Shown here: positions 24,987-48,309 of the stretch, piece after piece
How positions within the stretch are numbered: position 1 is the first letter of the stretch
Layout of the letters: every line of letters begins with the position of its first letter
Origin: Selaginella moellendorffii
Taxonomy: Eukaryota; Plantae; Lycopodiophyta
DNA length: 64,000 bases
Reading direction: 5' to 3'
Assembly (NCBI RefSeq): GCF_000143415.4
Contig: NW_003314262.1
Span: forward strand, 2,840,603-2,904,602
Made by a program: the position numbers and the translations under genes
The notes under the pieces: model-generated
Seen by the model: only the letters and a program-made list of their open reading frames with translations
The model's database searches: none
Told to the model about the DNA's origin: nothing

Positions 24987-25387
24987 GTCGTTTCTGCATT
25001 TTGCTAACTTCTATTCGGTTCTAGTCACAAGAAAGTTGAATAAGTTTCATTTTCTGGTTTAGTAATCATATGCTTCTCAAGAAAAGGTGGTGGGAGCTAA
25101 ATTTCATGTTTTCGCTTTTTCTTATTAAAGAGGAAAGTTGATCCTTTCAAAACGACTATTTCATGGTTTGGCACATAGAAATCAATGTCTCGTGTTCTGG
25201 CTGCCGTCAAATTTATACCATTTCTGTGATAATTGGATACATTACGTCTAACGACTATGTCAAGCATAACATGCTGGCTAAATAGTCAGAACCGAGTGAC
25301 GCTGTAGCAATCTCGCTGGACTTGGTCTCCACTTCCTCCATCCTATAAATTGCCTCCACTTCCAATCCACCACACAGCAGCAAGTTT

Positions 25388-25422
<35 letters not shown>

Positions 25423-25455
25423 TCTCACTACACTTCGAAAGTTTCTTCTACCAAG

Positions 25456-25857
25456 ATGGCGAGCAAGTCCCAGCTGATGCTTCTGGCCATGTTTGTGACA
25501 GTCCTCCTGGTTGGAGTGGACGTTGGTGGCATCGCAAGCGCAGCAGCCCAGCAGAAATGCAAGTCTGGATGGAACTGGGACGGCTACAAGTGCATCCAGT
25601 GTCCCAAAGGGTGGTACTGGTATAGCAACGATTGCCACAGATGCCTCTCCGGTTGGAAGTGGAGTGGAAGCAAATGCGTGAGCTGCCCGAGCAACTGGTA
25701 CTGGTACAACAACAAGTGCCACCAATGCCCGTCCGGATGGAAGTGGAGTGGAAGCAAGTGTGTGAGCTGCCCGAGTGACTGGTATTGGTATAACAACGAT
25801 TGCCACCGCTGTCCGTATGGCTGGAAATGGAGCAAGGCTCACTGCACCAAGAACTAA
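25456..25857 (+). CDS. Secreted Trp/Cys-rich 14-aa tandem-repeat protein, copy 1 (133 aa)
   Basis: Signal peptide to AAA|QQ; 7 x C-x-x-x-W-x-W-x4-C-x-x; TATAAAT at 25344; AATAAA downstream. Confidence 0.9.
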   Translation: MASKSQLMLLAMFVTVLLVGVDVGGIASAAAQQKCKSGWNWDGYKCIQCPKGWYWYSNDCHRCLSGWKWSGSKCVSCPSNWYWYNNKCHQCPSGWKWSGSKCVSCPSDWYWYNNDCHRCPYGWKWSKAHCTKN

Positions 25858-25996
25858 GTCAGTTAACTCCAGCGAGAAAGAAGTACCTTCCAATTCGTTA
25901 GTTCATTGCGTCTTGTCCTCGAGATAATGTGCCAGCGTCTTTGGCAATTGATTTGATTCGAATAAAAGCACCTACTTGTTTTGAATATCGAACCTG

Positions 25997-27267
25997 TCAT
26001 CGTGCTGCAGCAGCAACCTCGGCAGCAAAGTCCTTTTCAAGCCTGGGAAAATGAAGCCAAGAATTGGTTCGTGAAGGCTTGGATTGTAACAAGGACTTAC
26101 TTTTCGATCCCCTCCCCGACTTCTATTCGCAGGAATCCCTCGATCTTGGCCGTCTTCCCGATTTCTTTGGCCGTCTCTTTTAGCAGGACCTGAAAGATCA
26201 AATCCTGAGGCTGATGAGACACATTCGAATGATGTGACTTACTTTGATCCGTTTCGTTTCGTCTGCAACGTACTTCTGCTCCAGAAGAACAACCTCTTCC
26301 ATGTATTTGGCAAGCCTGCCTTCGACCATCTTCTGAACGACGTTCTCTGGCTTTCCAGCAGTCGAGGCCTGCAACAACAAAACAAAAAAACAATAGACAA
26401 TCAATAAAAGGCAGAGAAAAACAAATGCCTTGCACCTGTGCTTTGCAGATGTTCCGCTCATGCTCCAGTACTTCAGAGTCCACGAGTTCCTTAGACAAAA
26501 ACAGCGGCCTTGCAGCAACAACATGCATTGCAAGAGACGAGCCCAAGCTTTTCAGTGTTTCCGAATGCGAGCCTTCTTGATCATCTTCAACCTCGAGCGA
26601 AACGAGCCCCGCGAGCCGAGATAAACCTTTCAGAATAAATCTGTGAGAAACGAGCAAACAGTGGAATTTACAAGTACCTGATGCCGGACTCATGTGCAAA
26701 TACGAGGACACGATCCCTCTTTGCGAAGACATATATAAAGCTCTTCGAAGTCTCACATTTTCTCCAGTGATAGCGGCAACTTCCGAGACTGCGTCGCGTA
26801 CACAAAGCTCTCTGGTGATTGATGCGTGATCCAGCTTCACATTTACAAGCTGGAAATTTCCAAACATGAAAGATCTTTCCTTCGAGAGAACAGACTTACC
26901 TCTAAATCGTGCAAATCAAGAGCAGCTGGTTTAGAAGAAAATTGTTGGACAGCTTCCAATGTGGATGCCGCTTTTGCGACTGACAGCACCTGGAAAAATC
27001 GTGAGCAAAACTAAAAGCCGAAGAAGATCATCCATCACTTACAAGGCTCTGGAAGAGATCGTTTCGAGCAACAAAGTCAGTCTCGCTGTTAATCTCTATG
27101 ACCGCGGCACCTTTCTCGAAGTGTGCCAGTCCAAGCAATCCTTCCGCAGCCACACGAGAAGATTTCTTCGTCGCGGCAGCAAGGCCCTTCTTCCTCAGCT
27201 CAGTAAACGCATCCTCTATAGAAAAATCCAAAGAAAAAATAATTCTTCCTTCCTTTAACATTAGCAT
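25997..27267 (-). pseudogene. 5'-truncated mitochondrial EF-Ts, copy 1 (native exon 1 missing; possible substitute ATG at 27267)
   Basis: [55 protein letters not shown]; sequence stops inside intron 1 at the duplication junction. Confidence 0.85.
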
Positions 27268-27463
27268 TATCTCCACATCGTAGAAATCCGCAGAAGAAAA
27301 AGGAAAGAAAGCTTCGTCAATTGTTTCGAAATGATACTTTTTTTGTCACCTTTATTTTTTGAAAAGAAACGGTTTATGTTTATTTATCCATAAGCTTCTG
27401 GAACCTTTGATTCTTATTACGCCTAATTCTGCTTCTTTCAAATAAGTTAGAAACCCTACCAGG

Positions 27464-28600
27464 ATGGAGGTTTTTAAGAAGGAAGGATTTAGCGGCATGG
27501 GTGCTTTGGGCAGTCCATCTGATTATTTCACTGACTGCAATCAAAAGCTTATCAAGTTTCGCATGTGTGCGATCCCAGTGGATAGGGAATCAAGAGCTAC
27601 CAGGTTTGCAAGTGCCGTGAAATGTATGCTGCAACACCCTTTTAAAGGAGCCCCAATGCTAGTGTTTTGTAATGGCAAGGATACCGCGTATGAAATCAAA
27701 CAGGTTTTGGATGCCAAGAGAGTGACAATGGCAACAGTAACTATAGTGGAGGAATTGAGCACTTTGGAGAAAAAGAGGGTCAAAGACAAGAGGGCAGTGG
27801 TTATTGTCACAAAAGATGTGATTGACAAGGTCTGTTTGCCTAGAATTTTTAAGGTGGTGGTGACCTATGATCTCGCTATAATTGGTATCAGAGCAAATGG
27901 CACAAGTTTGATTCTCATTGATTAGGGGCTATCTAAAATATAATATACCCTTGAGCAAGGTATATTTCTACTCCTAAATTTGAAAATCGTACATATGCGT
28001 ATGTCCTTCCTTTTGTGGAACATCTTAGACGAAGGTATTCACCATGGGATTACAGTACAAGTGGATGACTAATTGTCTTAGATGGAATAGTTGATCTACA
28101 CAATGGAGGGATTGGTAGATTTAGTGTGGAAATGGAAGTGTTAGTTCCCTTTGGCTCAGTAGGGGTTGGTAATCAATAGTCAATGAGGACATTGACATCT
28201 TTGAAGGGGGGTGAGTGTAGCGCATGTGATTATAGAATGAAATTTGAATATACTGTCACCGTGGATCTTTGGAACCTTGGGAGGGAGATAAATGGGGATA
28301 AAATGGGCTCTCTCATCAAGTTATTATCCCTTTTTCAATTGGTTTAAAGGGAGAGAAATAAAGTTTGATAAACTGAGCACATCAAATCTGGAGACTTTAT
28401 TGAGTTGGACAAAATTTGATACTCGATTTCTTCCTCGTTTCTGGCCTTCTGTGGTTACTCTATATCAGAACAAGGAGTTTTTGGAAAGCATCAAGCAGTT
28501 AGCACATTGTGTCTGCATGACTAAATTGTACAAGAGAGAGCGGACAATGCAGAAATTCAGTGATGCATATGCGGATTTCTTGTTTAGTCCGAAAGCATAG
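27464..28600 (+). pseudogene. Helicase-C-like ORF copy 2, interrupted by a TRIM insertion
   Basis: Matches 24348-24986 except for a 494-bp insert after VVTYD. Confidence 0.85.
27872..28365 (+). mobile_element. Non-autonomous LTR element (TRIM-like), circularly permuted with one split LTR
   Basis: CGCTATA (27874-80), then PBS TGGTATCAGAGC (27883-94), ~320 bp internal, PPT GAAGGGGGG (28203-11), then TGTAGCG (28216); TGAT on both flanks. Confidence 0.75.
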
Positions 28601-29052
28601 ATCGTTTCTGCATTTTGCTAACTTCTATTTGGTTCTAGTCACAAGAAAGTTGAATAAAGTTTCATTTTCTGGTTTAGTAATCATATGCTTCTCAAGAAAA
28701 GGTGGTGGGAGCTAAATTTCATGTTTTCGCTTTTTCTTATTAAAGAGGAAAGTTGATCCTTTCAAAACGACTATTTCATGGTTTGGCACATAGAAATCAA
28801 TGTCTCGTGTTCTGGCTGCCGTCAAATTTATACCATTTCTGTGATAATTGGATACATTACGTCTAACGACTATGTCAAGCATAACATGCTGACTAAATAG
28901 TCAGAACCGAGTGACGCTGTAGCAATCTCGCTGGACTTGGTCTCCACTTCCTCCATCCTATAAATTGCCTCCACTTCTAATCCACCACACAGCAGCAAGT
29001 TTTGCGAGAGAGAGAGAGATCTCACTACACTTCGAAAGTTTCTTCTACCAAG

Positions 29053-29454
29053 ATGGCGAGCAAGTCCCAGCTGATGCTTCTGGCCATGGTTGTGACAGTC
29101 CTCCTGGTTGGAGTGGACGTTGGTGGCATCGCAAGCGCAGCAGCCCAGCAGAAATGCAAATCTGGATGGAACTGGGACGGCCACAAGTGCATCCAGTGTC
29201 CCAAGGGCTGGTACTGGTATAGCAACGATTGCCACAGATGCCTCTCCGGTTGGAAGTGGAGTGGAAGCAAATGCGTGAGCTGCCCGAGCAACTGGTACTG
29301 GTACAACAACAAGTGCCACCAATGCCCGTCCGGATGGAAGTGGAGTGGAAGCAAGTGTGTGAGCTGCCCCAGTGACTGGTATTGGTATAACAACGATTGC
29401 CACCGCTGTCCGTATGGCTGGAAATGGAGCAAGGCTCACTGCACCAAGAACTAA
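29053..29454 (+). CDS. Secreted Trp/Cys-rich repeat protein, copy 2
   Basis: Intact 133-aa ORF, 2 aa different from copy 1. Confidence 0.9.
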   Translation: MASKSQLMLLAMVVTVLLVGVDVGGIASAAAQQKCKSGWNWDGHKCIQCPKGWYWYSNDCHRCLSGWKWSGSKCVSCPSNWYWYNNKCHQCPSGWKWSGSKCVSCPSDWYWYNNDCHRCPYGWKWSKAHCTKN

Positions 29455-29593
29455 GTCAGTTAACTCCAGCGAGAAAGAAGTACCTTCCAATTCGTTATTT
29501 CATTGCATCTTGTCCTCGAGATAATGTGCCAGCGTCTTTGGCAATTGATTTGATTCGAATAAAACCACCTACTTGTTTTGAATATCGAACCTG

Positions 29594-30865
29594 TCATCGT
29601 GCTGCAGCAGCAACCTCGGCAGCAAAGTCCTTTTCAAGCCTGGGAAAGTGAAGCCAGGAATTGGTTCGTGAAGGCTTGGATTGTAACAAGGACTTACTTT
29701 TCGATCCCCTCCCCGACTTCTATTCGCAGGAATCCCTCGATCTTGGCCGTCTTCCCGATTTCTTTGGACGTCTCTTTTAGCAGAACCTGAAAGATCAAAT
29801 CGTGAGCCTGATGAGACATATTCGAATGGTGTGACATACGTTGATCCATTTCGTTTCGTCTGCAACGTACTTCTGCTCCAGAAGAACAACCTCTTCCATG
29901 TATTTGGCAAGCCTGCCTTCGACCATCTTCTGGACGACGTTCTCTGGCTTTCCAGCAGTCGAGGCCTGCAACAACAAAACAGAAAAACAATAGACAATCA
30001 ATAAAAGGCAGAAAAATAACAAATGCCTTGCACCTGTGCTTTGCAGATGTTCCGCTCATGCTCCAGTACTTCAGAGTCCACGAGTTCCTTAGACAAAAAC
30101 AGAGGCCTTGCAGCAACAACATGCATTGCAAGAGACGAGCCCAAGCTTTTCAGTGTTTCCGAATGCGAGCCTTCTTGATCATCTTCAACCTCGAGCGCAA
30201 CGAGCCCCGCGAGCCGAGATAAGCCTTTCAGAATAAATTTGTGAGAAACGAGCAAACAGTGGAATTTACAAGCACCTGATGCCGGACTCATGTGCAAATA
30301 CGAGGACACGATCCCTCTTTGCGAAGATATATAGAAAGCTCTTCGAAGTCTCACATTTTCTCCAGTGATAGCGGCAACTTCCGAGACTGCGTCGCGTACA
30401 CAAAGCTCTCTGGTGATTGATGCGTGATCCAGCTTCACATTTACAAGCTGGAAATTTCCAAACATGAAAGATCTTTCCTTCGAGAGAACAGACTTACCTC
30501 TAAATCGTGCAAATCAAGAGCAGCTGGTTTAGAAGAAAATTGTTGGACAGCTTCCAATGTGGATGCCGCTTTTGCGACTGACAGCACCTGGAAAAATCGT
30601 GAGCAAAACTAAAAGCCGAAGAAGATCATCCATCACTTACAAGGCTCTGGAAGAGATCGTTTCGAGCAACAAAGTCAGTCTCGCTGTTAATCTCTATGAC
30701 CGCGGCACCTTTCTCGAAGTGTGCCAGTCCAAGCAATCCATCCGCAGCCACACGAGAAGATTTCTTCGTCGCGGCAGCAAGGCCCTTCTTCCTCAGCTCA
30801 GTAAACGCATCCTCTATAGAAAAATCCAAAGAACAAATAATTCTTCCTTCCTTTAACATTAGCAT
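29594..30865 (-). pseudogene. 5'-truncated mitochondrial EF-Ts, copy 2
   Basis: Same exons and same truncation/junction as copy 1. Confidence 0.85.
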
Positions 30866-32859
30866 TATCTCCACATCGTAGAAATCCGCAGAAGAAAAAG
30901 GAAAGAAAGCTTCGTCAATTGTTTCGAAATGATATACTTTTTTTGTCACCTTTATTTTTTGAAAAGAAACGGTTTATGTTTATTTATCCATAAGCTTCTG
31001 GAACCTTTGATTCTTAATTCTGCTTCTTTCAAATAAGTTAGAAACCCTACCAGGATGGAGGTTTTTAAGAAGGAAGGATTTAGCGGCATGATGAGAGGCC
31101 TTGCGCTGGCTGAGGCATGCCAGTTTCCGCATAGGCATCCATCTGGGAGAAGATGTCCAGAGCGTCTTGGATATGGCCTGATCTAGAACTCCACACCACT
31201 GCATCTCATTTGTCCCTTCGGAAGCACTCCTTGCAAGACCGAGCCTCTGGGCCTTGGAGCAGTTGATAAGCTCTGCTACCACAACTGGATCCGATTTAGG
31301 CCCTAAAATGGGCACTCGATCGTGAAGAAAGCTCATTTGTAGCAATGCATGCTTGCAACTGGTAAACGTGAACGTATCAGCCTTACCACCTTCAAGAGAG
31401 CTTCTTCGGGATAGCTGGTCTTGGACCATGGTGTTCCATCTCTCAAACTGCTAGCTTCAAAACATGTGACTTCAAAGCATTTTACCAACAACTAGATCAT
31501 CCCTGGTCAGAACATCTCCTCCAGTATAACACAGAAACTCCATGGCTCTTGAGCTGATCATGCCTGTGCTTATCCCAGACCTTGAAGAACTCGAGAATCC
31601 GTGGAGGAGAGCAACCAGCGTAAAGTTGCTTGCTAAGAAACCTTGTTTGAGAGCAGGCAGCCCAATGCAAACTCAACGAATCTAGAGTTGTCATTCTCCG
31701 GCATCATTGCATCCCCAGAATAAACAGCAGGGAAGAATGACAAGGCAACATTTTATCCACCACTTGAGAAATATGGTCCAGTTGAAGGATGTTCCAGGAT
31801 GGAGTGCTATTCCACTCGAATTGCTTCCATGATCCTTTGCTTCTGAGCGAGGCAGAGGATCATCGCTGTCCCTAGCCCCACATCCTTGTTTTCAGAGAAA
31901 TTCTCAAACACAGTCATTGCTTTCTCTGGATTTCCACAGCGGCCGTAGCAGCGCACCAATGCAGTGGACATGGCAACGTCCCATTCCTCACGACACAAGC
32001 ATGGATCTCTTCTCCATTGCCCAGATCGTCACAGCAAAGGCATCCTCTCGTAAATTGCAAATGCCTCATTGCATTGCCCGCACTGGGCATGAGCGTCGAT
32101 CATCGCGTTCCAGGCCAGCAAATCTTTCTGTCCAAGATTCTTAACAGCCAGACGAGCTTCATGGAGCAATCCACACATCCTCCGAATCTCTGTGGCAATC
32201 TGCAAATCCCTGCTAAGCCCACACTCCTCGAGGAGCGATCGAACAAGGTTGCCCTGTTCCAGCGTCAAGCAAGACCTCACCAGAGGGAGTGAACCTCCGG
32301 CTTCACTCCGTCCAAGCACATCTCCCCAAGAACATTAAATCTCTCATCCCTGCTAGCGTAGGCTGCGATCAAGAAGCCCCAAGGTAAGACATTCTTGTCG
32401 GCGATGGCATCGAATGCCGTGCGTGTGTCGTCCGTGCTGCCGCATTTGCCATACATCTCCACAAGAAGATTGCCGATCCTGGTGAGCGAGTGGCGGCCAT
32501 GGACTCGCAGCTGCGCAATCAGAGCGTGCAAGAGCTTGCCTGCTTCCAGGGCATTTAATCTGCCACATCTCAACACAAGAGCTCCAAACTCCTCCGCGTG
32601 GATCGCAATGTGGACACTGTTAACAGTTTATCCATGTCAGCATCGCTGGAAGAAAACCACGTGGCACTAATGTTTATAAGCCACGTATAAAGTGGTGCGT
32701 GGCCACGAAAACTTTCACCAGTCGGTAGGGTCGCAGTATCTCGCAGCTCAACGCAGCTCTTGATGCTTCCATTCCGCAGTTTGGCTCTCGTGGACTTGTT
32801 CCCAGAGTAAGTTGTAAGTGCTTAGACCAAAGAGTCGAGGCGCGTCTAACTTAACACAG

Positions 32860-33581
32860 ATGTTTCCATCAGAAACGATGCAGCATCTCTTGACTGCGAG
32901 GAAAGCTGAGATACCGCTCAAACCACACGCAGAAGGGTGGCACGCTCGTTGGCCGGGAGGCATTGGTGATCCATTTGAGCCTTACATGGTGAGGATTAAG
33001 TACATCCTATCATGAGAGCTGACTTGCGAGGAGTTTGCAGCAACTTCTCAAGCAATTCCTTAACATCGCATTGACATTTCACGCAAGGTAAGGAGAAACT
33101 TTCTCTATTCTCAGAAGAAGTAACCTTAGTTTCGTGCGTAAACAGGGCGATGGAGCAGCTAACAACGTTTGGAGCTGTAAGAGCAGCCAGCAAGAATGCA
33201 AGGGATGCTGCTTACATCAGGACACAAGCGGCGGCGGCGGGAATTTCAGTCAAGGAGTACCAAAGGTTATTGGACATGTTCATGAAGATCGACTCTGAAA
33301 ACACAGGGTAAGCAAAAACTCCTTTTTTACTTGGACAGCGACTCAATTTCCAAGTAACTTGCAGGAAAATCACCAAGGGCGAGCTCATGGTGAAGATGAA
33401 ACGCGACAAAGATGTCTGTGTACTTTCAAAAAGTCTCCTCTCCAACGGTGCTAAAAACTTGAATCTCTTTTGTGTGCTGTAGATCGCTGCCTTCATGCAG
33501 TTGTCCAGAGCACGAAACAAGGATGGCCGACGAGAGTCCTTCGAGAGTGTCTTCAACCGGATTGACAACACAGGCGAGTGA
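32860..33581 (+). CDS. Five-exon EF-hand calcium-binding protein, probably 3'-truncated
   Basis: Exons 32860-32988, 33041-33087, 33146-33307, 33365-33413, 33483-33581 splice in frame: ..LLDMFMKIDSENTGKITKGELM..FESVFNRIDNTGE*. Confidence 0.65.
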
Positions 33582-34134
33582 AGGATGGCAGGCAGATCCC
33601 CGCAGAGCTTGGTCATGGCGGGATTGTTCTTGCTGAGGAGGAGCCGGAGGTTCTGGAGCTGGAAAATCTCCTTGGACTGCCCCAAGTTATCTGTGGAGCA
33701 GCTTGAGGCCTGGCCTTCATGATGACCAAAGGTTGAGGATGATGCTCTTGAGGTCTTGGCAATCGCCATCATGCTGTGGATCCTTAGGACCTTCTTCAGG
33801 ACGTAGAGCTGGCACAGGAAGGATGGATTGCTAAGCACTTGATCGTGCACTGCTGGGCCTGGCTTCAAGCTGCCACAATGCTTGCAATCTGGGCATCAAT
33901 AATCCAAGTATTGCTATGGTTCTTGGACTGCTGCGAGTTCTCCTCCCAACCTGAGGCTGCTCTGATCACGATGCTCCGAGCCCAGCACACCAAGCCATTC
34001 CTGAGCCCTCAGAAGTTATGTGTCATGGATTAGTCATTGATGCTCATGTGAATAAACATTTGCCACGTGGACGTGCAAAAAATTTACATGTGCAGAGCTA
34101 CAAATTGCATGCCATAAGTTAGTTAAAAGGCCAA

Positions 34135-34430
34135 GAGTTGCTAGATAATGGTTGTTCTCACAACTTCATGTCAAGAGCAATGCTACAGTGGCTGGGCTTG
34201 ATGACTAAGGAACCATTGGACGTCAGGGTGGCAAATGGCAGTGACGACGGTTCCTGTCTTTGTTCTTCCAAATCCTGCAAAGTCGTTCATAGTGATGACA
34301 TATGCAAGTGATGCTGGAATCAGTGTTGTGCTCATGCAAGACAATAATGTAATCGCTTTTGAAAGTCATAAATTTTCAAGTGCTGAATCTCATTACTCAG
34401 TTTATGATAAAGAATTTATTGCCAGAAACA
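34135..34430 (+). mobile_element. Ty3/gypsy pol remnant (protease and RNase H-like fragments)
   Basis: LLDNGCSHNFMS..VRVANG; PVFVLPNPAKSFIVMTYASDAGISVVLMQDNNVIAFESHKFSSAESHYSVYDKE; second copy at about 52360-52645 on the - strand. Confidence 0.75.
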
Positions 34431-36337
34431 CATTCTCACGGGGGGTGGATTTTGAAGTCATGTCGATCATCAATGCGCTACAGCATTAAAAGTTTCAATT
34501 AGTCAGTGATAACAATAGAAAAAAATAACATTTCGGGACAAGATGATTACAAATTTCAACAAACATCACTGGAGTGTCAACTTCCGGGCCATGATGCATT
34601 GCTTGGAGCGTAATCCGTGTGCATAGTCCTTCTAAGTTCGAAAGTTAACCAGCATTTCTACCTTGCTTGACGGCAACTTCTTTTAAGAGTCCGAAGGTGG
34701 TGAAACAAATTTGACAGAAAAGAGCAAGAAAATTAAAGCTTACTAGTCTGATAAAAGTTACAGCAGTTTGTTCATGAAGATAATCTCCATGCCACAATGT
34801 TGTGATGGTGGAGATTGTCTTCGCCAACAATCGAGCCAGCAGTCTCACATTTCCCATAGGGAAGTTACAAGAACAAATTTCTAAACAAGGGTGGGGTTTG
34901 AGCCACAAGCAAAGTCACATCCTTGGACCTGTTGGAATATCTGAGGAATCTAGTGCTCTTCCACAATCATGAGGCCATATCTCAGTCTCCCACCATCCTC
35001 CAAAAGCTCTCCACCATCGCACACGGTAGCAATTCCTTGCTTTTAAGAGAAGAGTTAGACTCTCCCATCTCTTGCGCAGCTTGAGCACCCAACTCGTCCA
35101 AGAAGATCAACCATATGAAACAGGTGACCACCAACCGCTCCTGGTCAAGATACTCATAAAAGTCACTTGATTTGGCTCCACTGTTGCATCCTCTGGAACA
35201 GTTCCATTGACTTAGAGTTCCAGCTGTGCTAAGTGTGAGCTGAGATCATGGCAGTCCATGAGATTGGAGTGGAAGCTCATCCTGTCAAACCTTTGCATAA
35301 GAGCATTGTCTCCGACTTGAACATGAAATCCCGGGTGCTTTGGGCAGTCCATCTGATTATTTCACTGACTGCAATCAAAAGCTTATCAAGTTTCGCATGT
35401 GTGCGATCCCAGTGGATAGGGAATCAAGAGCTACCAGGTTTGCAAGTGCCGTGAAATGTATGCTACAACACCCTTTTAAAGGAGCCCCAATGCTAGTCTT
35501 TTGTAACGACAAGGATACCGCATATGAAATCAAACAGGTTTTCAATGCCAAGAGAGTGACAATGGCAACAGTAACTGTAGTGGAGGAATTGAGCACTTTG
35601 GAGAAAAAGAGGGTCAAAGACAAGAGAGCGGTGGTTATTGTCACAAAAGATGTGATTGACAAGGTCTGTTTGCCTGGAATTTTTAAGGTGGTGGTGACCT
35701 ATGATAAACTGAGCGCATCAAATCTGGAGACTTTATTGAGTTGGACAAGATTTGATACTCGATTTCTTCCTGGTTTCTGGCCTTGTGTGGTTACTCTATA
35801 TCAGAACGAGGAGTTTTTGGAAAGCATCAAGCAGTTAGCACATTGTGTCTGCATGACTAAATTGTACGAGAGAGAGCGGACAATGCAGAAATTCAGTGAT
35901 GCATATGCGGATTTCTTGTTTAGTCCGAAAGCATAGAGTGTTTCTGCATTTTGCTAACTTCTATTCGGTTCTAGTCACAAGAAAGTTGAATAAGTTTCAT
36001 TTTCTGGTTTAGTAATCATATGCTTCTCAAGAAAAGGTGGTGGGAGCTAAATTTCATGTTTTCGCTTTTTCTTATTAAAGAGGAAAGTTGATCCTTTCAA
36101 AACGACTATTTCATGGTTTGGCACATAGAAATCAATGTCTCGTGTTCTGGCTGCCGTCAAATTTATACCATTTCTGTGATAATTGGATACATTACGTCTA
36201 ACGACTATGTCAAGCATAACATGCTGGCTAAATAGTCAGAACCGAGTGACGCTGTAGCAATCTCGCTGGACTTGGTCTCCACTTCCTCCATCCTATAAAT
36301 TGCCTCCACTTCTAATCCACCACACAGCAGCAAGTTT

Positions 36338-36371
<34 letters not shown>

Positions 36372-36401
36372 CACTACACTTCGAAAGTTTCTTCTACCAA
36401 G

Positions 36402-36803
36402 ATGGCGAGCAAGTCCCAGCTGATGCTTCTGGCCATGGTTGTGACAGTCCTCCTGGTTGGAGTGGACGTTGGTGGCATCGCAAGCGCAGCAGCCCAGCAG
36501 AAATGCAAATCTGGATGGAACTGGGACGGCCACAAGTGCATCCAGTGTCCCAAAGGCTGGTACTGGTATAGCAACGATTGCCACAGATGCCTCTCCGGTT
36601 GGAAGTGGAGTGGAAGCAAATGCGTGAGCTGCCCGAGCAACTGGTACTGGTACAACAACAAGTGCCACCAATGCCCGTCCGGATGGAAGTGGAGTGGAAG
36701 CAAGTGTGTGAGCTGCCCCAGTGACTGGTATTGGTATAACAACGATTGCCATCGCTGTCCGTATGGCTGGAAATGGAGCAAGGCTCACTGCACCAAGAAC
36801 TAA
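36402..36803 (+). CDS. Secreted Trp/Cys-rich repeat protein, copy 3
   Basis: Intact 133-aa ORF, protein identical to copy 2. Confidence 0.9.
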   Translation: MASKSQLMLLAMVVTVLLVGVDVGGIASAAAQQKCKSGWNWDGHKCIQCPKGWYWYSNDCHRCLSGWKWSGSKCVSCPSNWYWYNNKCHQCPSGWKWSGSKCVSCPSDWYWYNNDCHRCPYGWKWSKAHCTKN

Positions 36804-36921
36804 GTCAGTTAACTCCAGCGAGAAAGAAGTACCTTCCAATTCGTTATTTCATTGCGTCTTGTCCTCGAGATAATGATTTGATTCGAATAAAACCACCTAC
36901 TTGTTTTGAATATCGAACCTG

Positions 36922-38417
36922 TCATCGTGCTGCAGCAGCAACCTCGGCAGCAAAGTCCTTTTCAAGCCTGGGAAAATGAAGCCAGGAATTGGTTCGTGAA
37001 GGCTTGGATTGTAACAAGGGCTTACTTTTCGATCCCCTCCCCGACTTCTATTCGTAGGAATCCCTCGATCTTGGCCGTCTTCCCGATTTCTTTGGACGTC
37101 TCTTTTAGCAGAACCTGAAAGATTAAATCGTGAGCCTGATGAGACATATTCGAATGGTGTGACATACGTTGATCCGTTTCGTTTCGTCTGCAACGTACTT
37201 CTGCTCCAGAAGAACAACCTCTTCCATGTATTTGGCAAGCCTGCCTTCGACCATCTTCTGGACGACGTTCTCTGGCTTTCCAGCAGTCGAGGCCTGCAAC
37301 AACAAAACAAAAAAACAATAGACAATCAATAAAAGGCAGAGAAAAACAAATGCCTTGCACCTGTGCTTTGCAGATGTTCCGCTCATGCTCCAGTACTTCA
37401 GAGTCCACGAGTTCCTTAGACAAAAACAGCGGCCTTGCAGCAACAACATGCATTGCAAGAGACGAGCCCAAGCTTTTCAGTGTTTCCGAATGCGAGCCTT
37501 CTTGATCATGTTCAACCTCGAGCGAAACGAGCCCCGCGAGCCGAGATAAACCTTTCAAAATAAATCTGTGAGAAACGGAGCAAACAGTGGAATTTTACAA
37601 GTACCTGATGCCGGACTCATGTGCAAATACGAGGACACGATCCCTCGTTGCGAAGATATATAGAAAGCTCTTCGAAGTCTCACATTTTCTCCAGTGATAG
37701 CGGCAACTTCCGAGACTGCGTCGCGTACACGAAGCTCTCTGGTGATTGATGCGTGATCCAGCTTCACATTTACAAGCTGAAAATTTCCAAACATGAAAGA
37801 TCTTTCCTTCGAGAGAACAGACTTACCTCTAAATCGTGCAAATCAAGAGCAGCTGGTTTAGAAGAAAATTGTTGGACAGCTTTCAATGTGGATGCCGCTT
37901 TTGCGACTGACAGCACCTGGAAAAATCGTGAGCAAAACTAAAAGCCGAAGAAGATCATCCATCACTTACAAGGCTCTGGAAGAGATCGTTTCGAGCAACA
38001 AAGTCAGTTTCGCTGTTAATCTCTATGACCGCGGCACCTTTCTCGAAGTGTGCCAGTCCAAGCAATCCTTCCGCAGCCACACGAGAAGATTTCTTCGTCG
38101 CGGCAGCAAGGCCCTTCTTCCTCAGCTCAGTAAACGCATTCTCTATAGAAAAATCCAAAGAAAAAATAATTCTTCCTTCCTTTCCACAATCTCATCAAGA
38201 GCATACCTTCGTTCCATTCACATTTCACCAGCACTTCCTTGACATCCTTGATCGGCGCCCCGGTCCGCTCGCGCAGCGTCTTGATGAGATCGGTGCGCGA
38301 GGAAGCATCGACAGAGAAAGATTTCGCACCGATTGCAGTGATTCTAGGCAATCCACGCACCGATCGGCCCCTACAAATCGCCGTCGCCGCGCGCCATAGC
38401 GGAGCTCCTCTCGCCAT
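36922..38417 (-). CDS. TSFM: Mitochondrial elongation factor Ts, complete copy
   Basis: Arg-rich transit peptide [21 protein letters not shown]; [17 protein letters not shown]; [10 protein letters not shown]; ends [11 protein letters not shown]. Confidence 0.92.
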
Positions 38418-38513
38418 TGCAAGGCACATTTTAGGGCTTGGACAAGAAAGAAAGAATTTGATGGGGTTTTAGAAAAAATTGCCATTGACGGGATTCGAAC
38501 ACTCGACGTATTG

Positions 38514-40402: not shown

Positions 40403-40557
40403 CGCGCCCTTTCTTCCCAGAAATATTTCTGGATAGAACAAAGAGCCCTAAAGTAGAGCACGCAGAATTAGAGTTTAAACCTTACACGGGTTTTAGACGT
40501 GGGATCCCGGTCTGACGTGGCGGCTTATATTTGGGCCTAAGTTCCACGTCATGGTAT

Positions 40558-40577
40558 TTTCCAGAAGATTCTGGAGC
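40558..40577 (+). promoter_or_regulatory. Heat-shock element
   Basis: tTTCcaGAAgaTTCtgGAG about 140 bp upstream of the DnaJ ATG; TGACGTGGC, TGGGCC and CCACGTCA motifs at 40513-40551. Confidence 0.65.
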
Positions 40578-40713
40578 TAAAGCTATCAGGGTTTTGAGGC
40601 GATCGGTCGATCGACTGCGCTGTGAAATTTCCGGATTCGCGAGAGTAGTGTAGCGAGATTCGAGCTTCTAGGATCAAGAAAGGGGGAAAATCCTTGCTAG
40701 CGACTAGGAATCG

Positions 40714-42001
40714 ATGGGGATAGATTACTACAGCGTGCTCAAGGTGGACAAGAATGCCACCGAGGATGATCTCAAGAAGGCCTACCGCAAGCTCGCCATG
40801 AAGTGGCATCCCGATAAGAATCCCAACAACAAGAAGGAGGCCGAGGCCAAATTCAAGCAAATCTCGGAAGCGTATGAGGTATGATCCATCCCTCTTTTTT
40901 CTCTCCTCTCGATCGACTGTGGCTGATCGATCGATTTCTGTGATTCGCAGGTGCTGAGCGATCCCCAAAAGAGGACGATCTATGACCAGTATGGCGAGGA
41001 GGGTCTCAAGGGCCAAGTTCCTCCTCCCGGCGCCACGGGAGGGACGAATTTCGCGAATGGCGCCGGGCCCAACGTGTTCGTGTTCAATCCTAGGAACGCC
41101 GAGGACATCTTTGCCGAGTTCTTCGGTGGATCCAGCCCGTTTGGGATGGGAGGTTTTGGGAGGAGCGCTAGCCGGTCGCCCTTTGGCGATGGAATGTTTG
41201 GGGGCTTTGGTGGAACCGAGAACGTTTTCAGATCCTTCGGCCAGGATGGTGGATCTCTGTCGACCGGTCCGAGGAAAGCTCCGGCGGTGGAGAACAAGCT
41301 CCCGTGCAGTCTCGAGGAGCTCTACACTGGCTCCACCAGGAAGATGAAGATCTCTCGCAACATCGCCGATCCCAGCGGGTAAGTTTCTTTGGAAAGTTAG
41401 AACCTTGCTAGAACTTCGCTAGAACTTCCTTAGAACTTTGCTAAACCTTGCTAGAACCTTGCTAGAACTTCGCTAGAACTTTGCTAGAACTTCGTTAGAA
41501 CTTTGCCTAGAACGCTCTTATGGAGGATTCTAACGTGAGAGCTTCTTGTTTCTTTACAGGAAGACAATGCCTGTGGAGGAGTTTCTTACTATCGACGTGA
41601 AGCCGGGGTGGAAGAAAGGCACCAAGATCACTTTTCCAGAGAAGGGAAACGAGCAGCCAAACTTGATACCGGCGGACATCGTCTTCGTGATCGACGAGAA
41701 GCCACACGACGTTTTCAAGCGCGACGGCAACGACTTGGTGATGACACAGAAGGTGTCCCTGGCCGACGCTCTAACAGGAACGACGATCACAGTGAACACT
41801 CTCGACGGAAGAACGCTCACGATTCCCATCAACGACATCATCTCTCCCGGCTACGAGAAGATTGTTCCACGGGAAGGCATGCCGATCGCCAAGGAGCCAG
41901 GCAGGAAAGGAGACCTCAAGATCAAATTCGACGTCAAGTTTCCCACGCGACTCACTCCAGAGCAAAAGGCCGCCGTGAAGAGATACTTGACCACTGCGTG
42001 A
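40714..42001 (+). CDS. Class II (DNAJB-type) J-domain co-chaperone, 3 exons
   Basis: [16 protein letters not shown]; G/F-rich linker; [11 protein letters not shown]; [13 protein letters not shown]. Confidence 0.95.
41398..41513 (+). repeat. Intronic 11-bp minisatellite (TAGAACYTYGC) x ~10
   Basis: Read directly in DnaJ intron 2. Confidence 0.9.
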
Positions 42002-42153
42002 AGAAGAGTTCCTGGCGAGCTCCAGCGGCAGTGGCATCGTAATTTTGTAAGTGTAAAGACGTCCTAAGAAGTACGTAAGTCTGTTCTTCGTTAAAAAAAT
42101 TCCTTTGCTCGGTAAATTCAACTCTTTACTCGCAGATCTCTGTCTCTCCCTCT

Positions 42154-43878
42154 TTACTTGGAAGAGTTTGCAGTAGCGATCATCTGTAAGAACTCCGCCC
42201 GCTTCTTGCCATGGACGGCAAAATCGCCCATTGTCGCCAGCGTTCCTGTAGTGCTGCCGGTTTTCTTCACGCCTCGAGAGATCATACAGACGTGCCCAGC
42301 CTCGACGACAACCATGACGCCGCTAGCAGCAGTGGAGCTCATCACAGCGTCGGCGATTTGCCTCGTCAATCTCTCCTGGACTTGGAGCCGGCAGCTGTAC
42401 AGCTTGACAATCTTCTCGAGGATGCCCCGACTAGCTCTGGGATGAGAGCTCGGGTGGTTTTTCGCTGGAAGAACTCCGACGTGAGCCACTCCGGAGAATG
42501 GAAGAAGATGGTGCTCGCATTGGGAACAGAATGGAAGATCCAGCACAGCTACCATCGTCACGTGGTGATCGCCATCCTGTTCTACTGCTGCTACTCCATT
42601 CCCGAGTATGAAGTCCCTAGAGAGCCGGCTCCCGTGCGTTGATGCTAGCAGCCAGCGAACGTAGCGAGAAGGCGTGAGCTTGAGCTCCTCCCGCGTTGGA
42701 TCTTCGCCAAGAGCTCGCAGCAGCGTCACCACCGCCTCGACCATCGTCTCAAAGTTGGGGTGCGAAGATCTCTCAGCGGCGGCGTCACCGGCTAGTAGCG
42801 GACAGATCGCCGGCTTCTTCGTCACCGAGAGCTGCGAGCTTCCACTCAGCTGGAGCATGGCAACGAACTCTTGCCAGTCTTCCGAGCCACGATCGTCGTC
42901 CTCGAAGCTGCCTTTCCTGGCGCAGACCGATCGTCGAATCCAGGAAGCCGGCTCCTTGCTGCTTCGAAGCTCGCGGGGACACTCGAGATGCCAAGTCTCT
43001 CCAACCACGGCCACCCCGAGAGGCTTAAATCCGTCCCAGAGAGCTCCTGCGATCTCGTTGGCGAGACGATCCGGGCTTTGGAGCCGAGCTGCGAAGATCT
43101 CCGCGACGCGGGGGAGCTTGCTGAGGCCGACGACGCGCTGCTCGGAGGGAATGTAAGCGATGTGACAGCAGAGCTTGAATGGTAAGAGGCAGGACTCGCA
43201 GGTGGAGAAGAGCTCGATGTTTCGGACCACCACCATTCCTCCGCAGCCGCCACCTTTGCCGTTTCCAGGGCCCGCTTCTGCAAAGAGAGCTCCACCGATG
43301 GTTTGCTCCGCCGAGAGTCCATAGCCTATGGTCCAAGTAAGAGAAGAAGTTTAGAAGAAAGCTTGAAACGTAGAAGCCTGTCCAACAGAGCTTAGAACTC
43401 TCTCCAAGCTCTATAAAGAAAGAAGATTTCTAAGCTTGAAAACTTAGACCTCTATCCGACATGAAAAAAAAAGAGTTCTATACGAAAGTCTCGGCTCGCG
43501 AGATTTAAAAAAGAAAAGCTTTGTCATCTAGCAGAGAAGACCGACGCAAAGAACCAATCACTCAAGAGAAAGAAAGGAAGGGACTGTGATGCAAGCGCTA
43601 CGCGATCGAAATCTCGCCTTGGAAGAGAAATGCTAACCTTTAGTGGCAGAGAGGAAGGCATTGGCGACCCTGGACGGCGTCTTGATCAGTCCATTGCGCG
43701 AGAGATCCTCGCCCAGCCCCTGGAGCAGCGCGCGCACCGAGCTCACCAGCCGCGAATCGGCTACCAGATCGCCGTCGCCGTCGTCCACGAGACAATCCTC
43801 GTCGCTGGCTGCTGACCTATCGGAATCGCTGGCGCTGCTGGCGCTGCTCACAAACTCCGCGATCGGCAATGCCCCCAT
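42154..43878 (-). CDS. GCH1: GTP cyclohydrolase I, plant tandem two-domain type, 2 exons
   Basis: LGEDLSRNGLIKTPSRVA; FSTCESCLLPF; VVGLSKLPRV; SQCEHHLLPF; RLQVQERLTRQIA; HVCMISRGV. Confidence 0.93.
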
Positions 43879-44236
43879 AGCCCGAGCGATCGATCGCCCG
43901 ATCGAGGAAAGAAGAAGAATAGATCGATCGATCGCCCGCGCCGACAAGAATGCCTCCCCGCCGTAGAAGAGAGACAAAGGAATTCGAGTAGGACTCTTCC
44001 AGTCCACACAAAATCATACCTCGCACTTTAGGGTTTTTTCATCATGCCATGGGGCCAAGGCCGTACGGGCGCCACCAACCGTACATTAACGCAATCCAAA
44101 ATTAATTACTTTTATTATTAGATTTATTTTTGCGTTTTTATTAATAAAATTAACATGCGCATAAACCATATTCAACTCTCCCAAGAGCGTTTAAAGAGGA
44201 AGTTTCCTCCCATTTTTAATCTTGGAGATCGTTGCA

Positions 44237-45444
44237 ATGTTGAGGGTGATTTTCCTGTTGGGCTTATTGGTTCTTTTGTCTCAGCATAATCTATGCAAAG
44301 GTCATGCCGAAGATGATCTTCACCCCGCTCTTGTTAATGCGAATGAGAGAAAGATCGACGTTTATGTTGGGCCGAGCAGCGATTTCAAGACGATCCAGGC
44401 CGCCATCGATGCTGTTCCACTGGAGAACAAGCGGCGCTATATAATCCATGTCGCCAGCGGAGTTTATCGGTAATCACTATAGCATTACTATCATTAATGC
44501 TTGTGTTCTCTTGCAGCGAGAGAATCACGATTCCAGCAAGCAAGGATTTCATCACGCTCTTGGGCAACTTTGATGACAAGTTTGCGACGATTGTTGTGTC
44601 CGCTGGAAACGAGCCCACACTCTCAGTTCAGGCAAAGTACTTTGTTGCGCAGTTCATCACATTCAAGGTACTTCCGAGTTCTTGTCTCTTCAACTTTTAT
44701 TAATATGAAGTTTAGAACGATGCACCATTTGTTTATGCTGGAGCCGTAGAAGAACAACAAAGCAACACCGTAGCCGTGCAAGTATCGGGTGACTTTGCGG
44801 CGTTTTACGACTGTTTCATCACTTCGAGCCAGCATACGCTCTCTGAAGACCGCGGCAGACATTTCTACAAGAGGACCTTCATCCAAGGCAGTATAAACTT
44901 CATCACTGGACAAGGAAGGTCATTATTCCAGGTAAATATGAAACTGAAGAAGAATTGCTTCGTCCGTGACGCTTATATGATCAATTCTTTGCGTGCACAG
45001 GAGTGTAATATCGTCTCCAACTCGAGGAACAACACTGGAGGGATTACTCTTCAGTCTAAGCCAGAGCGATCGTGGGGTTACTCGTTCGTCAACAGCTACT
45101 TTGGAGGAACTGGGCAACTGTCTTTCGGCCACCCTTGGAAAGATTTTGCCCGCGTTGTGCTTATCAGTAGCTATTTCGACGAAGTTGTAATTCCAAACAA
45201 CTGGGACAGATGGCCATACAACAATGGCAATGGGTATGAATCTAGATATTGGCTCGTAGGCATGTAATCGTTTTTCTGTGTGATTTCCAGGAACGTTTTG
45301 TTTGCTGAGTACGATAGTCAGGGTCCAGGGGCTGTCCCCACGAAGCTTGCCAATTGGGTGAAACACTTGAGCGAAGAAGAGGCTCAGGACTACAGCAGTA
45401 TTGCGTTTGTGGATGGGGAAGAATGGCTGTTCTTGGAAGTCTAA
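44237..45444 (+). CDS. Pectin methylesterase-like protein (no PMEI pro-region), catalytic residues substituted
   Basis: Signal peptide; DFKTIQAAIDAVP; GVYRERITIP; SGDFAAFYDC; FAEYDSQGPGA; five short GT-AG introns with the frame kept. Confidence 0.85.
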
Positions 45445-47479
45445 ACTTATAATTTTCACTAACAATTTTCACTAACAAGCTAAACATGTCTAAATTCCAA
45501 CTTCATAATATAAACAAGATCTAACCGCAGCTTCCAACTTGCATGGCGTTTGAAGTTTCGCGTTTCCCAATGATATGTATGTTTCTGTTTTGAGATTATA
45601 CATGTCCATGTCCAAGTGCAACAAAAGTGTCCCACTTATCCACTTATGGGAATTGAATCCGCTCCTAAACGACACCACAAACACTGATCTTAAAGCTAAA
45701 GCTCCAGAAATCCATAATTCTACAAGGATGAATAGTCATGGCGATGTTGGTGACACTCCTCAAATCCGGATCGACACAGCACTATGACAAGTAATTTTTA
45801 AGAAAGGCATGGTTTGTAATTAGGAGCGGATTACATAAAAAATCAGGGTAAGTTTAGTTGCCTCTTCCAAAGTAGCGTTTCTTAGCATTTTGTCATACCT
45901 CATTTATATGGAAAGTAAAATTATAATTAAATGCCATATATTCAAAACTCTATAAGCCAATTACTACTGTAACACTAAAAGCACTTAATATTCTAATTGT
46001 TCTTCTTGTTCGAGTTAAAAAAATTATTAAGAGTAATTCTTATATTATCTCTATCTTCATAATTTTCTTGATTAAGGATATAATTATTATTATTAATATT
46101 AAATATTGTTAATGGAATATCTTTTTGTTTTATATTATTATTTTCATACCCCATTACAACTGCTTATTGATCCTAGATAGTATATTTCTAATTGTTTGTG
46201 AAAGCTGAATTATAATAATTAAAATCTCATTTTGTCTAAGTGTGTTTTTTTCTCTATAGTCTAAAGTATAATCATCAGGAGTAACAAAATATAAAAAATT
46301 AAGAAAAATTTCATAATAAATTTGAAGTTTACCTATACAATATATCTAAATTACAAAATGAGAAATTAATAAAAAAACAAGAAAGGATAAAATACTTTTA
46401 TGAGTCAAGTGGGTATTCCAAGATCAATATTTTAATTTTAATTTTATTATATTTTATCAAATGATCTCAGCTTCAAAAGTATTTTTAGATTATCTATCTA
46501 GGAGATTGTAGTAAGAGATCAGAACCTGGATATAAAGGAATCTAAAATGAGGGGGAAGCATGGCAGAAATGTGGTAAAACATGAAAAAAATGAAAAGTCT
46601 AAGATGGTGGGCATCATTATAACACAAGAATCTCAAACTTGGAGGATGGTGGGCCTTGGACAATCATGGCCCTTTGTTCTTTTAAGAATAATTTTCATCT
46701 TCTTTAGAAAGAAAAGATTGTTGTTTGTGAAAAAAAATTTGGCTTGCAATCAGCCATTGATTGAAACCGACTATAGAAACACAGTGATCTCGAGCATGAG
46801 AAGCTGTTGGAAGACGTCTCTAACAAGCTGGAATAGCCAATAGAAGAGGCTCGCCATCTTCTTTTGGAGAGGGAATCTTACATGACTTGCTGTGGGAACA
46901 CAGACGTCTCCAGTAAGGAAGAAGATTCTTTAGAGCTTGCTGTGAGTTTGCAATCAAATATAGGAATATAGTGATCCCATTGAGAGGTCTTGATGAAGTC
47001 TTCAACTTAGAGCAGCCTAGCAAAATCTATGTGCAAGAAAAAGCTCGCCACCTTCTTTGGCGAGCTGGCTGGTAGAATCTTTGTGTGGATGATTATAAAC
47101 ATGCGTAAGAGATGGTGGAGCATGGAGGGGAGTTAGAGGCCCAATATCACGGTTCTTGGAACTATTTGACCATTCCAACTTCATATCCTTATTATAATAT
47201 AGTAAGAAAGTTTCCAACAGCAGCTTCCAACCTGCATGGCGTCTGAAGATTCCACAGGCCGTTTACACACGTACTAGTTCTTGACTATATCAAGAGCAAC
47301 AAAGTGTACGCGGTAAGAAGTCAAAGCCGAGTGAAGACGATTATTTAGACTTCGTCCCTTCCAACATCTCGGTGCTATAAATTCCCCAAACCACACCCTG
47401 ATCTTTAAGAAGCTAAAGAAGTTGGAGAGATCTAGATCATAGTTTAGAATCTGATATCACAATTCTGAGATCAATCATC

Positions 47480-47779
47480 ATGGCGAGCAAGTCCCAGCTG
47501 ATACTCTTGGCGATGTTTGTGACATTCCTCCTAGGGGGAGTGGACGCCCAGCAGCGATGCAAATCCGGATGGAACTGGGATGGTGAGAAGTGTATCCAGT
47601 GCCCGAAAGACTGGTACTGGTATGGCAACGGTTGCCACCAATGCCTCTCCGGATGGAAGTGGAGTGGAAGCAAATGCGTGAGTTGCCCAAGCAGCTGGTA
47701 CTGGTATAGAAATGGCTGCCATCGCTGCCCTCCTGGTTTGAGCTGGAGTGGTGGTGGAAGCCGCTGCATTAGGATGTGA
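47480..47779 (+). CDS. Secreted Trp/Cys-rich repeat protein, diverged copy 4 (99 aa, 5 repeats)
   Basis: MASKSQLILLAMFVTFLLGGVDA|QQRCKSGWNWDG..; TATAAAT at 47376. Confidence 0.88.
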   Translation: MASKSQLILLAMFVTFLLGGVDAQQRCKSGWNWDGEKCIQCPKDWYWYGNGCHQCLSGWKWSGSKCVSCPSSWYWYRNGCHRCPPGLSWSGGGSRCIRM

Positions 47780-48309
47780 TCACACAACACTGCTGTAATA
47801 TGACTTCACCACGGCATTTGCAGGAATAAAGATTTTCTGTAATAAACCTGGAGTTTGAAGGAAAACTGTGGCATTTGCAGGAATAAAAGCTCTTGCAGCT
47901 TCGATTGTAGCATTCCCATTAGCCGTGTTGAGGAAGCAATCCACCTGCAATTAGAGTTTTTGAGGTGGCTTTTCTTGGTTTGATCGGTTTGGAGATGTTA
48001 TCTAGCCCCCCTTATTTTGACTCAAAGTTTGCAACCTTTGTAATTTCTCCGTAATTTCTTGTTGCATAGACTATGAAGGGACTGTCCAAGAGAGACTGGT
48101 GGGCGGCGAGGACATTTGAACGCAAGGACTATTGACTTCGTATTGGATGCTACGCCAAAAGATCTGATGGCTCTTGTCGTAGACATCCCCATGCATTGTC
48201 CATTATGCTTGGCTGCATGTACTCAACTTCATATGGTGGAGGATTACTCGTCTCAAGCTCGAAGGAGACGGCTGTAAAGCTCGGCTTACACATTTAGCAT
48301 GAACCTTGG

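Follow-up and report, generated by a model that had tools for sequence, protein, structure and literature searches.

A 64,000-nucleotide (nt) stretch of the Selaginella moellendorffii genome (assembly GCF_000143415.4, contig NW_003314262.1, positions 2,840,603 to 2,904,602 of the forward strand; hereafter the window) carries four genes for small, predicted secreted proteins built from 14-residue repeats rich in tryptophan and cysteine (hereafter the Trp/Cys proteins). These genes are real, transcribed and under purifying selection. Their products are most aptly viewed as a miniature, Trp-enriched form of a widespread hairpin-repeat module, that of the Pfam family DUF5874; they are unannotated, have so far been seen in Selaginella alone and do not constitute a categorically new fold or system. 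The explanation that best covers the data as a whole, and which we consider probable though not secure, combines functional genes, predicted secretion, a hairpin rod derived from DUF5874 and a role in binding. An expressed and constrained multi-copy family is thereby added to the reference lycophyte genome, both public annotations of which lack it.

Four transcribed genes

A six-frame scan of the window with the pattern C-x3-W-x-W-x4-C returned 25 matches, distributed 7, 7, 7 and 4 over four intronless open reading frames (ORFs) of the plus strand (25456-25857, 29053-29454, 36402-36803 and 47480-47779) and with none elsewhere. ORFs and scan together uphold the four genes proposed at these positions by a first-pass annotation made from the letters of the window, and tblastn detected no further copy or pseudogene in the 64 kb. 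Copies 1-3 encode 133 amino acids (aa) each and copy 4 encodes 99. The first three sit in a 3.6-kb unit that is triplicated across positions 24175-38183 at 96-100% identity; they are spaced 3597 and 7349 nt apart, the larger interval being due to an insertion of ~4 kb between copies 2 and 3. Six differences separate copies 1-3, four or five of them synonymous. These near-identical genes would stem from a recent tandem triplication of the 3.6-kb unit, and copy 4 would be an older, diverged member. The features mapped in and around the genes are as follows.

25343..25351, plus strand: CTATAAATT, TATA-box motif 113 nt upstream of the copy 1 ATG
25391..25420, plus strand: 5' leader microsatellite of copy 1, (GA)15; copies 2 and 3 have shorter tracts
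25456..25857, plus strand: coding sequence (CDS) of copy 1, 133 aa, 7 repeats, intronless; predicted signal peptide encoded by 25456-25548
25612..25832, plus strand: internal tandem unit of copy 1, 84 nt = 28 aa, one type B plus one type A repeat
28958..28966, plus strand: CTATAAATT, TATA-box motif 95 nt upstream of the copy 2 ATG
29053..29454, plus strand: CDS of copy 2, 133 aa, differing from copy 1 by 2 aa
29558..29563, plus strand: AATAAA polyadenylation-like signal of copy 2, ~105 nt after the stop
36293..36301, plus strand: CTATAAATT, TATA-box motif 109 nt upstream of the copy 3 ATG
36402..36803, plus strand: CDS of copy 3, 133 aa; same protein as copy 2, 2 synonymous nucleotide differences
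47375..47383, plus strand: CTATAAATT, TATA-box motif 105 nt upstream of the copy 4 ATG
47480..47779, plus strand: CDS of copy 4, 99 aa, 4 perfect and 1 degenerate repeats, 73% aa identity to copy 1

Comparison of copy 1 with copy 4 gives a ratio of nonsynonymous to synonymous substitution rates (dN/dS) of 0.13 overall and 0.11 over the repeats, with dS about 0.8-1.15 (about 1.15 over the repeats); the five other frames yield 0.36-4.1 or contain stops. At the nucleotide level the similarity of copy 4 to copies 1-3 is limited to the CDS, and the flanks are unalignable apart from the TATA-box motif. This 9-mer, CTATAAATT, occurs four times in the 64 kb against an expectation of 0.28, each time on the plus strand and 95-113 nt upstream of one of the four ATGs. 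AATAAA-type signals lie downstream of the stops. The window would accordingly hold four functional, intronless genes of RNA-polymerase-II type, with at least one further paralogue elsewhere in the genome.

Transcription is seen in public RNA data. For a 701-nt stretch that is 57% CDS, fourteen RNA-type runs from seven studies contained a share of 0.48-0.67 of the words sampled. Words of copy 4 were present in part, in fewer RNA runs and at a share of up to 0.43; these shares are the basis for its transcript structure, the read-level examination having covered copies 1 and 2. An EF-Ts gene on the minus strand overlaps the region, and since its antisense reads run over the Trp/Cys genes, contigs assembled without strand information are ambiguous by themselves, both transcripts being merged in them. 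In stranded raw reads from runs X34 and X35 the EF-Ts gene is covered exclusively by reads whose first mate lies on the plus strand, so that reads with the first mate on the minus strand mark plus-strand RNA. Such sense reads cover copy 2 at a depth of 8.6-11.3 in X34, where the EF-Ts neighbour reaches 20-23, and at 1.4-3.1 in X35; the sense depth drops beyond ~29500. Eight of 12 sense reads have the copy-1/3 letter at position 29205, and three of four in X34 have the copy-3-specific T at the position equivalent to 29403, which indicates that at least two copies are transcribed. A 666-nt RNA contig is colinear with 28841-29496 and ungapped over the CDS, so that the gene has no intron. The first-pass annotation had been prepared to fall if no copy yielded a transcript or protein; stranded sense reads are present.

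The idea that the ORFs are chance frames, their apparent transcription belonging to the antisense EF-Ts 3' end or the true product being a minus-strand ORF (e.g., 25255-25893), is already largely refuted and has only a minute probability: antisense reads over the region are indeed continuous with the EF-Ts exons and long minus-strand ORFs exist, but purifying selection is confined to the plus frame (the minus frames give 0.36-2.7), sense-strand reads are found, the TATA motif and predicted signal peptide are kept in the diverged copy 4, which lacks an EF-Ts neighbour, and the minus-strand ORFs begin at TTG in a frame that varies between copies.

Two side observations come from the same data. 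Five sense reads of X34 skip 88 nt and insert 4 (29326-29415), a net loss of 84 nt equal to one A+B unit, which points to a transcribed five-repeat allele or paralogue absent from the window. Near-identical gene words (0.25-0.48) also occur in runs X12, X14 and X33, which are labelled as three other organisms and may represent congeners, mislabelled samples or contamination.

Repeats, relatives and predicted fold

The proteins are probably secreted, judging from their N-termini. Judged by eye with von Heijne-type rules, each begins with a putative signal peptide in which the n-region is basic, the hydrophobic core is 15 residues long and the cleavage site (A-x-A|QQ) has small residues at -3/-1; AlphaFold2 models residues 4-18 as a low-confidence helix followed by disorder. 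In copies 1-3 cleavage is predicted after residue 31 (A-A-A|Q-Q). The signal peptide of copy 4 is 8 residues shorter through a deletion in the c-region and keeps the A|QQ junction, in line with the earlier proposal of a signal peptide followed by an N-terminal Gln. No transmembrane segment, glycosylphosphatidylinositol-anchor-like tail or N-glycosylation sequon was seen on reading the protein sequence. Cleavage before Gln-Gln would release from copies 1-3 a 12-kDa rod of seven 14-residue modules, with an isoelectric point (pI) of 9 and a charge of +10, and from copy 4 a 9-kDa rod of five.

For the mature chain of copies 1-3 computation reproduces the composition first noted, 102 aa with 14 Cys, 14 Trp and a net charge of +10, and gives 12.3 kDa, pI 9.0, 7-8 Tyr, 14 Lys and Arg and 4 Asp and Glu, Trp amounting to 14% and Tyr to 7-8% of residues. 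The strict C-x3-W-x-W-x4-C-x2 pattern also holds, with seven repeats in which type A (G-W-K-W-S-G-S-K) and type B (W-Y-W-Y-N-N) hairpins alternate. Copy 4, reported with five repeats, has four perfect ones and a degenerate fifth (C-x12-C, one Trp). In the DNA, the recently expanded unit measures 84 nt and comprises a type B and a type A repeat; it is present in 2.6 copies with 82% matches, and repeats 3 and 5 of copy 1 share 88% of their nucleotides and repeats 4 and 6 share 81%.

To which known proteins are these repeats related? No Pfam family reached its threshold for the window proteins. The best sub-threshold profiles were TNFR_ELAPOR1_6th (PF23091; 25.7 bits, E 1.1e-5, threshold 33.2), DUF4215, Ephrin_rec_like (PF07699; 15.2 bits against 23.1), Furin-like_2 (PF15913; 13.1 against 28) and DUF5874 (PF19202; gathering threshold 27.1), with 11.7 bits for copy 1 (E 0.36) and 10.7 for copy 4. 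Defensin, thionin, hevein, snakin/GASA, nsLTP, cyclotide and puroindoline families gave no Pfam match even at E<=10, and the sevenfold C-x10-C-x2 array has the Cys spacing of none of the classical plant antimicrobial peptide families, so the exclusion of defensin, thionin, hevein, snakin, LTP and cyclotide patterns made on first reading stands.

When 1.84 billion cluster representatives were searched exhaustively with phmmer, 280 matches were obtained at E<=1e-3, of which 40 reached E<=1e-10 (best 5e-30). Nearly all are long multi-repeat proteins. The relatives that can be placed are bacterial, including P0003, which lies among genes for thymidylate kinase, DNA polymerase III delta' and TatD, and others that are DUF11 proteins; further ones belong to a chytrid, to an ascomycete and to the alveolate Amoebophrya. 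Identity to such relatives is 37-42% over ~98 aa. No plant homologue outside Selaginella is among the 280. On DUF5874 the query-matching stretches of these relatives reach 37-54 bits, above its 27.1 cut-off, and hhalign aligns the window family with them at a probability of 99.4% (E 7.8e-22, 95 columns). As judged from these profiles, the family is related to DUF5874-type modules. The first-pass label of an unrecognised family is thus right in that no Pfam family is reached at threshold and not supported in its strong sense, since a profile-level relative exists.

Column statistics define the shared module as C-P-x-G-[QTY]-x-W-[ND]-G-[ST]-x-C-[VI]-x. The window proteins have in common with their relatives the C, P, G, second W, G, C and V/I, whereas the position of the first Trp is usually occupied there by Q, T or Y. 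Measured against the consensus C-P-x-G-x-x-W-[ND]-G-x-x-C-[VI], repeat 1 (G-W-N-W-D-G) fits, type A repeats fit except for a Ser at [ND], and type B repeats retain just the C, P, second W and C. Arrays of C-x3-W-x-W-x4-C occur in no other phmmer match and the type B array in none of the 150 best, and from this comparison the first Trp and the type B WYWY hairpin appear to be specific to Selaginella. The CxxC-x10-CxxC lattice recurs 12-38 times in several matches. Since the second Trp belongs to the shared module it is a family feature and most likely a structural one, and probably belongs to a structural mini-core and not to a ligand-binding aromatic face; the first-pass picture of an aromatic face has to be revised to that extent.

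Fungal, protist and bacterial DUF5874 modules, the last found with DUF11, resemble the window repeats in their 13-14-residue unit and their C-(x1-2)-C-P-x-G-x-x-W-[ND]-G-x-x-C framework. The window proteins differ in that all their repeats are joined by a strict CxxC, Trp stands first where the relatives have Q/T/Y, and type B hairpins (W-Y-W-Y-N-N) alternate with type A; they are also tiny, stand-alone and predicted to be secreted, whereas DUF5874 proteins are 200-3000 aa long. The module is probably a Trp-enriched derivative of the widespread DUF5874 unit.

Several candidate relatives were set aside. P0035, P0047 and P0049 (134-137 aa, metagenomic) resembled full-length homologues in size and were rejected because their G-W-T-W-D repeats are free of Cys. 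These small signal-peptide proteins, which were matched through the W-x-W hairpin motif alone, may form an unrelated Trp-zipper-like repeat family, probably actinobacterial by composition. P0010 has a 14-residue W-E-W repeat with one Cys and resembles a translated DNA tandem repeat. Profile matches in the PDB to complement receptor and other sushi repeats are periodic coincidences of C, G and W, no stretch of which passes singly. No description of a Selaginella Trp/Cys family was found in the literature on Selaginella, DUF5874, lycophyte antimicrobial peptides or mastigonemes, nor any mention of DUF5874 in the literature searched.

AlphaFold2 was run with an 80-row alignment (mean predicted local distance difference test score, pLDDT, 83, and >90 throughout the repeats) and from the single sequence (pLDDT 78). 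Both models contain seven beta-hairpins, one per repeat, in which DSSP assigns W-x-W-x to strand 1 and x-C-x-x to strand 2. In this register the second Trp and the second Cys are partners across the hairpin. The two Trp would lie on the same face as that Cys, and the opposite face would present Lys/Lys in type A and Tyr/Tyr with Lys/His in type B. In TNFR A1 or "beta-finger" modules the first segment is disulfide-bonded to the third. The window repeats likewise consist of C-x10-C joined by x2 and C-P-x-G-aromatic, which predicts seven intra-repeat bonds, each closing a hairpin through its own two Cys. Alternatively, 1-3/2-4 bonds could form within 28-residue A+B units, and such pairing would fit the 84-nt expansion unit. 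With one hairpin predicted per repeat, with and without the alignment, the earlier image of a ladder of disulfide-stapled beta-hairpins is a fair one.

Searched for similar folds, the two models retrieved growth-factor-receptor/TNFR-class rods only, always weakly (E>=0.007, template modelling (TM) score <=0.40, Z<=3.9). They comprise the Cys-rich domain of Chlamydomonas MST1; 4-1BB, TNFR1, HVEM, CD27 and CD40; ELAPOR1, whose chains are matched by the A1 profile at 1e-10; R-spondin FU repeats; furin/PC5 Cys-rich regions; Cys-rich domains (CRD) of class-C G-protein-coupled receptors (mGluR-CRD); and ciliate furin/VSP-like clusters. MST1 chains were the best Foldseek matches in the PDB (E>=0.028, TM 0.2-0.34), VIA gave Z<=3.9 and the Atlas TM 0.40, elongated flexible rods being difficult to superpose; scores of the ESM Atlas feature search were <=0.71 and serve as leads only. 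With fold matches of this weakness, membership in the fold rests mainly on the sequence profiles, and the class is probably that of the TNFR/furin-like growth-factor-receptor Cys-rich rods.

Modules of TNFR A1, of the TNFR-like region of ELAPOR1 and of ephrin-receptor-like proteins (GCC2/GCC3) likewise carry a C-P-x-G-aromatic...C hairpin each and are strung into a rod; unlike TNFR-type proteins, those of the window have no two-disulfide B-type modules, transmembrane segment or death domain, and their scores are sub-threshold. Furin-like and growth-factor-receptor rods (R-spondin, PC5/6, Giardia VSP, ciliate proteins, MST1) share CxxC-spaced "beta-finger" hairpins and provide the top fold matches in Swiss-Prot, the PDB and the Atlas, but are large, multi-domain and without WxW arrays, and Furin-like_2 stays below its cut-off. 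The link to furin-like CxxC repeats, which had been called a loose resemblance, is therefore stronger than first stated, through the profile kinship with DUF5874 and the weak TNFR, furin-like, ephrin-receptor-like and mastigoneme fold matches. As a minimal stand-alone representative of the DUF5874/TNFR-like type, with 102 residues in seven modules, the mature protein would be convenient for structure determination, disulfide mapping and binding work.

Possible roles and origin

If these rods leave the cell, what might they do there? The role we tentatively prefer, at somewhat less than an even chance, is that of an apoplastic or wall-located binder of polyanionic wall polymers or microbial envelopes. 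The polycationic Lys/His and Tyr face would attach the protein to such surfaces, and attachment would confer a defensive or wall-protective function, with gene amplification raising the dosage. The preference is circumstantial and derives from the polycationic charge, the Lys/His/Tyr faces, the gene amplification and the lack of an anchoring or catalytic part. Puroindolines and hordoindolines offer a compositional analogy only: they too are ~13-kDa, basic, Cys-rich and Trp-rich secreted plant proteins, but their fold is helical, of the nsLTP/2S-albumin type, and they share neither sequence nor Pfam similarity with the window proteins. Both are regarded as lipid-binding and antimicrobial.

Several points weigh against the explanation as a whole. 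The window proteins lie below every Pfam threshold; the scores of Cys-rich repeats are inflated by composition and periodicity; and every fold match is weak. Antisense reads from the convergent EF-Ts 3' end cover the genes and exceed the sense reads in X35. The strong purifying selection (0.13) is unlike the diversifying pattern frequent in arms-race defence genes. Finally, both Trp share a face with the stapling Cys and may be buried against the disulfides and not displayed. Taken together, purifying selection and the likely structural status of at least half of the Trp argue against reading the Trp as a plain aromatic binding face.

A bolder version, which we regard as speculative, sees a lycophyte-specific new class of defence or wall-binding miniprotein, perhaps on a horizontally acquired DUF5874 scaffold, in which the first Trp and the WYWY hairpins of a rigid seven-hairpin rod form a continuous aromatic-cationic surface. 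That surface would bind de-esterified pectin, chitin, cellulose or microbial membranes; the position of these genes next to PME (pectin methylesterase) paralogues at two loci is part of this reading. If Trp/Tyr/Lys surfaces do bind wall polymers or microbes, they would represent a new type of plant lectin or antimicrobial outside the seed-plant repertoire.

It is unlikely that the proteins are instead self-associating structural or adhesive components of the wall, with rods packed side by side or end to end through Trp/Tyr interfaces, after the model of MST1 or of the Cys-rich repeat proteins of fungi (QI74 type) and chironomids (Balbiani ring). The Cys-rich domain of MST1, the best PDB match, is described as a growth-factor-receptor-type rod that pairs with itself in antiparallel orientation and builds filaments (PMC11015965). 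Structural matches in AFDB/Swiss-Prot include Balbiani ring protein 3, a QI74 protein and a "cell wall cysteine-rich protein", and expression is moderate across many studies. All these matches are weak, however; the protein, of 102 aa, is very small and lacks a Pro/Hyp-rich or anchoring region, and its charge of +10 makes homotypic packing unfavourable unless a polyanion is present.

As to origin, we give a rather low probability to the family having reached the lineage of Selaginella horizontally, a bacterium or fungus donating a DUF5874-type repeat gene that was domesticated afterwards. The genes are intronless, the 280 phmmer matches include no other plant, and the named or placeable relatives are bacterial (P0003; DUF11), chytrid, ascomycete or from Amoebophrya, at the identities given above. 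Against this, short repeats on a Cys framework change quickly and are open to convergence; protein databases miss small plant genes that lack annotation, as they missed these four; the promoter and polyadenylation signals are typically eukaryotic; and such repeats give no reliable tree.

Least probable of the functional alternatives is a secreted signalling ligand for a receptor ectodomain, after the manner of R-spondin with LGR/ZNRF3 or of EPF, LURE and RALF peptides with receptor kinases: R-spondin Fu1-Fu2 is among the structural matches, copies 1 and 4 are strongly conserved (dN/dS 0.13) and the size is typical of plant Cys-rich peptide ligands, but the near-identical triplication and the repeat-number variants fit dosage or bulk roles better, the window contains no receptor candidate, and the internally repetitive sequence offers no distinct epitope.

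Annotation status and neighbouring genes

The exact sequences of the four proteins are absent from a collection of 15 billion proteins, and a word-indexed protein search gave one match, a mis-modelled Selaginella protein, the wider relatives coming to light in the phmmer search. Of Selaginella the searches turned up two models only, both faulty. SELMODRAFT_403507, a model of 157 aa that spans 2 kb (window 47480-49507), takes the ATG and first 34 codons of copy 4 and then leaves its ORF at a GT donor within the first repeat, and is thus mis-spliced; its 22-kb locus on scaffold GL377566.1 is 100% identical to window positions 37480-59507. RefSeq XP_024531936.1 (P0005), named "putative pectinesterase 11", is 91% identical to copy 1 over its first 53 residues; the remainder is an intact pectin methylesterase (PME) from another scaffold, with Q-D-T-L and D-F-I-F-G. 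This chimera implies that at least one further Trp/Cys paralogue exists. The unannotated genes thus corrupt at least two gene models, and small Cys-rich secreted proteins in general make up a major and chronically under-annotated share of plant extracellular biology.

A PME paralogue also lies in the window, at 44222-45444 and 2 kb upstream of copy 4, with Q-H-T-L and N-F-I-T-G at the places of the two motifs above. The occurrence of Trp/Cys genes beside PME paralogues at two loci could be due to segmental duplication or to a functional link.

The EF-Ts gene of the minus strand is of mitochondrial type and spliced (26100-27217, 29480-29638, 38209-38238), its six GT-AG introns measuring 50-67 nt each. 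The last exon and the 3' end extend through the adjacent Trp/Cys gene in antisense, so that the two form a convergent overlapping pair. The upstream EF-Ts exon is found once, at 38209, and only the EF-Ts copy beside Trp/Cys copy 3 is thus full length, those beside copies 1 and 2 being 5'-truncated. In the leaders of copies 1-3 the (GA)n microsatellite (25391-25420, 29005, 36330-36350) varies in length among the copies, and also among RNA contigs of different samples, which carry GAGAGA and GAGAGAGAGA insertions.

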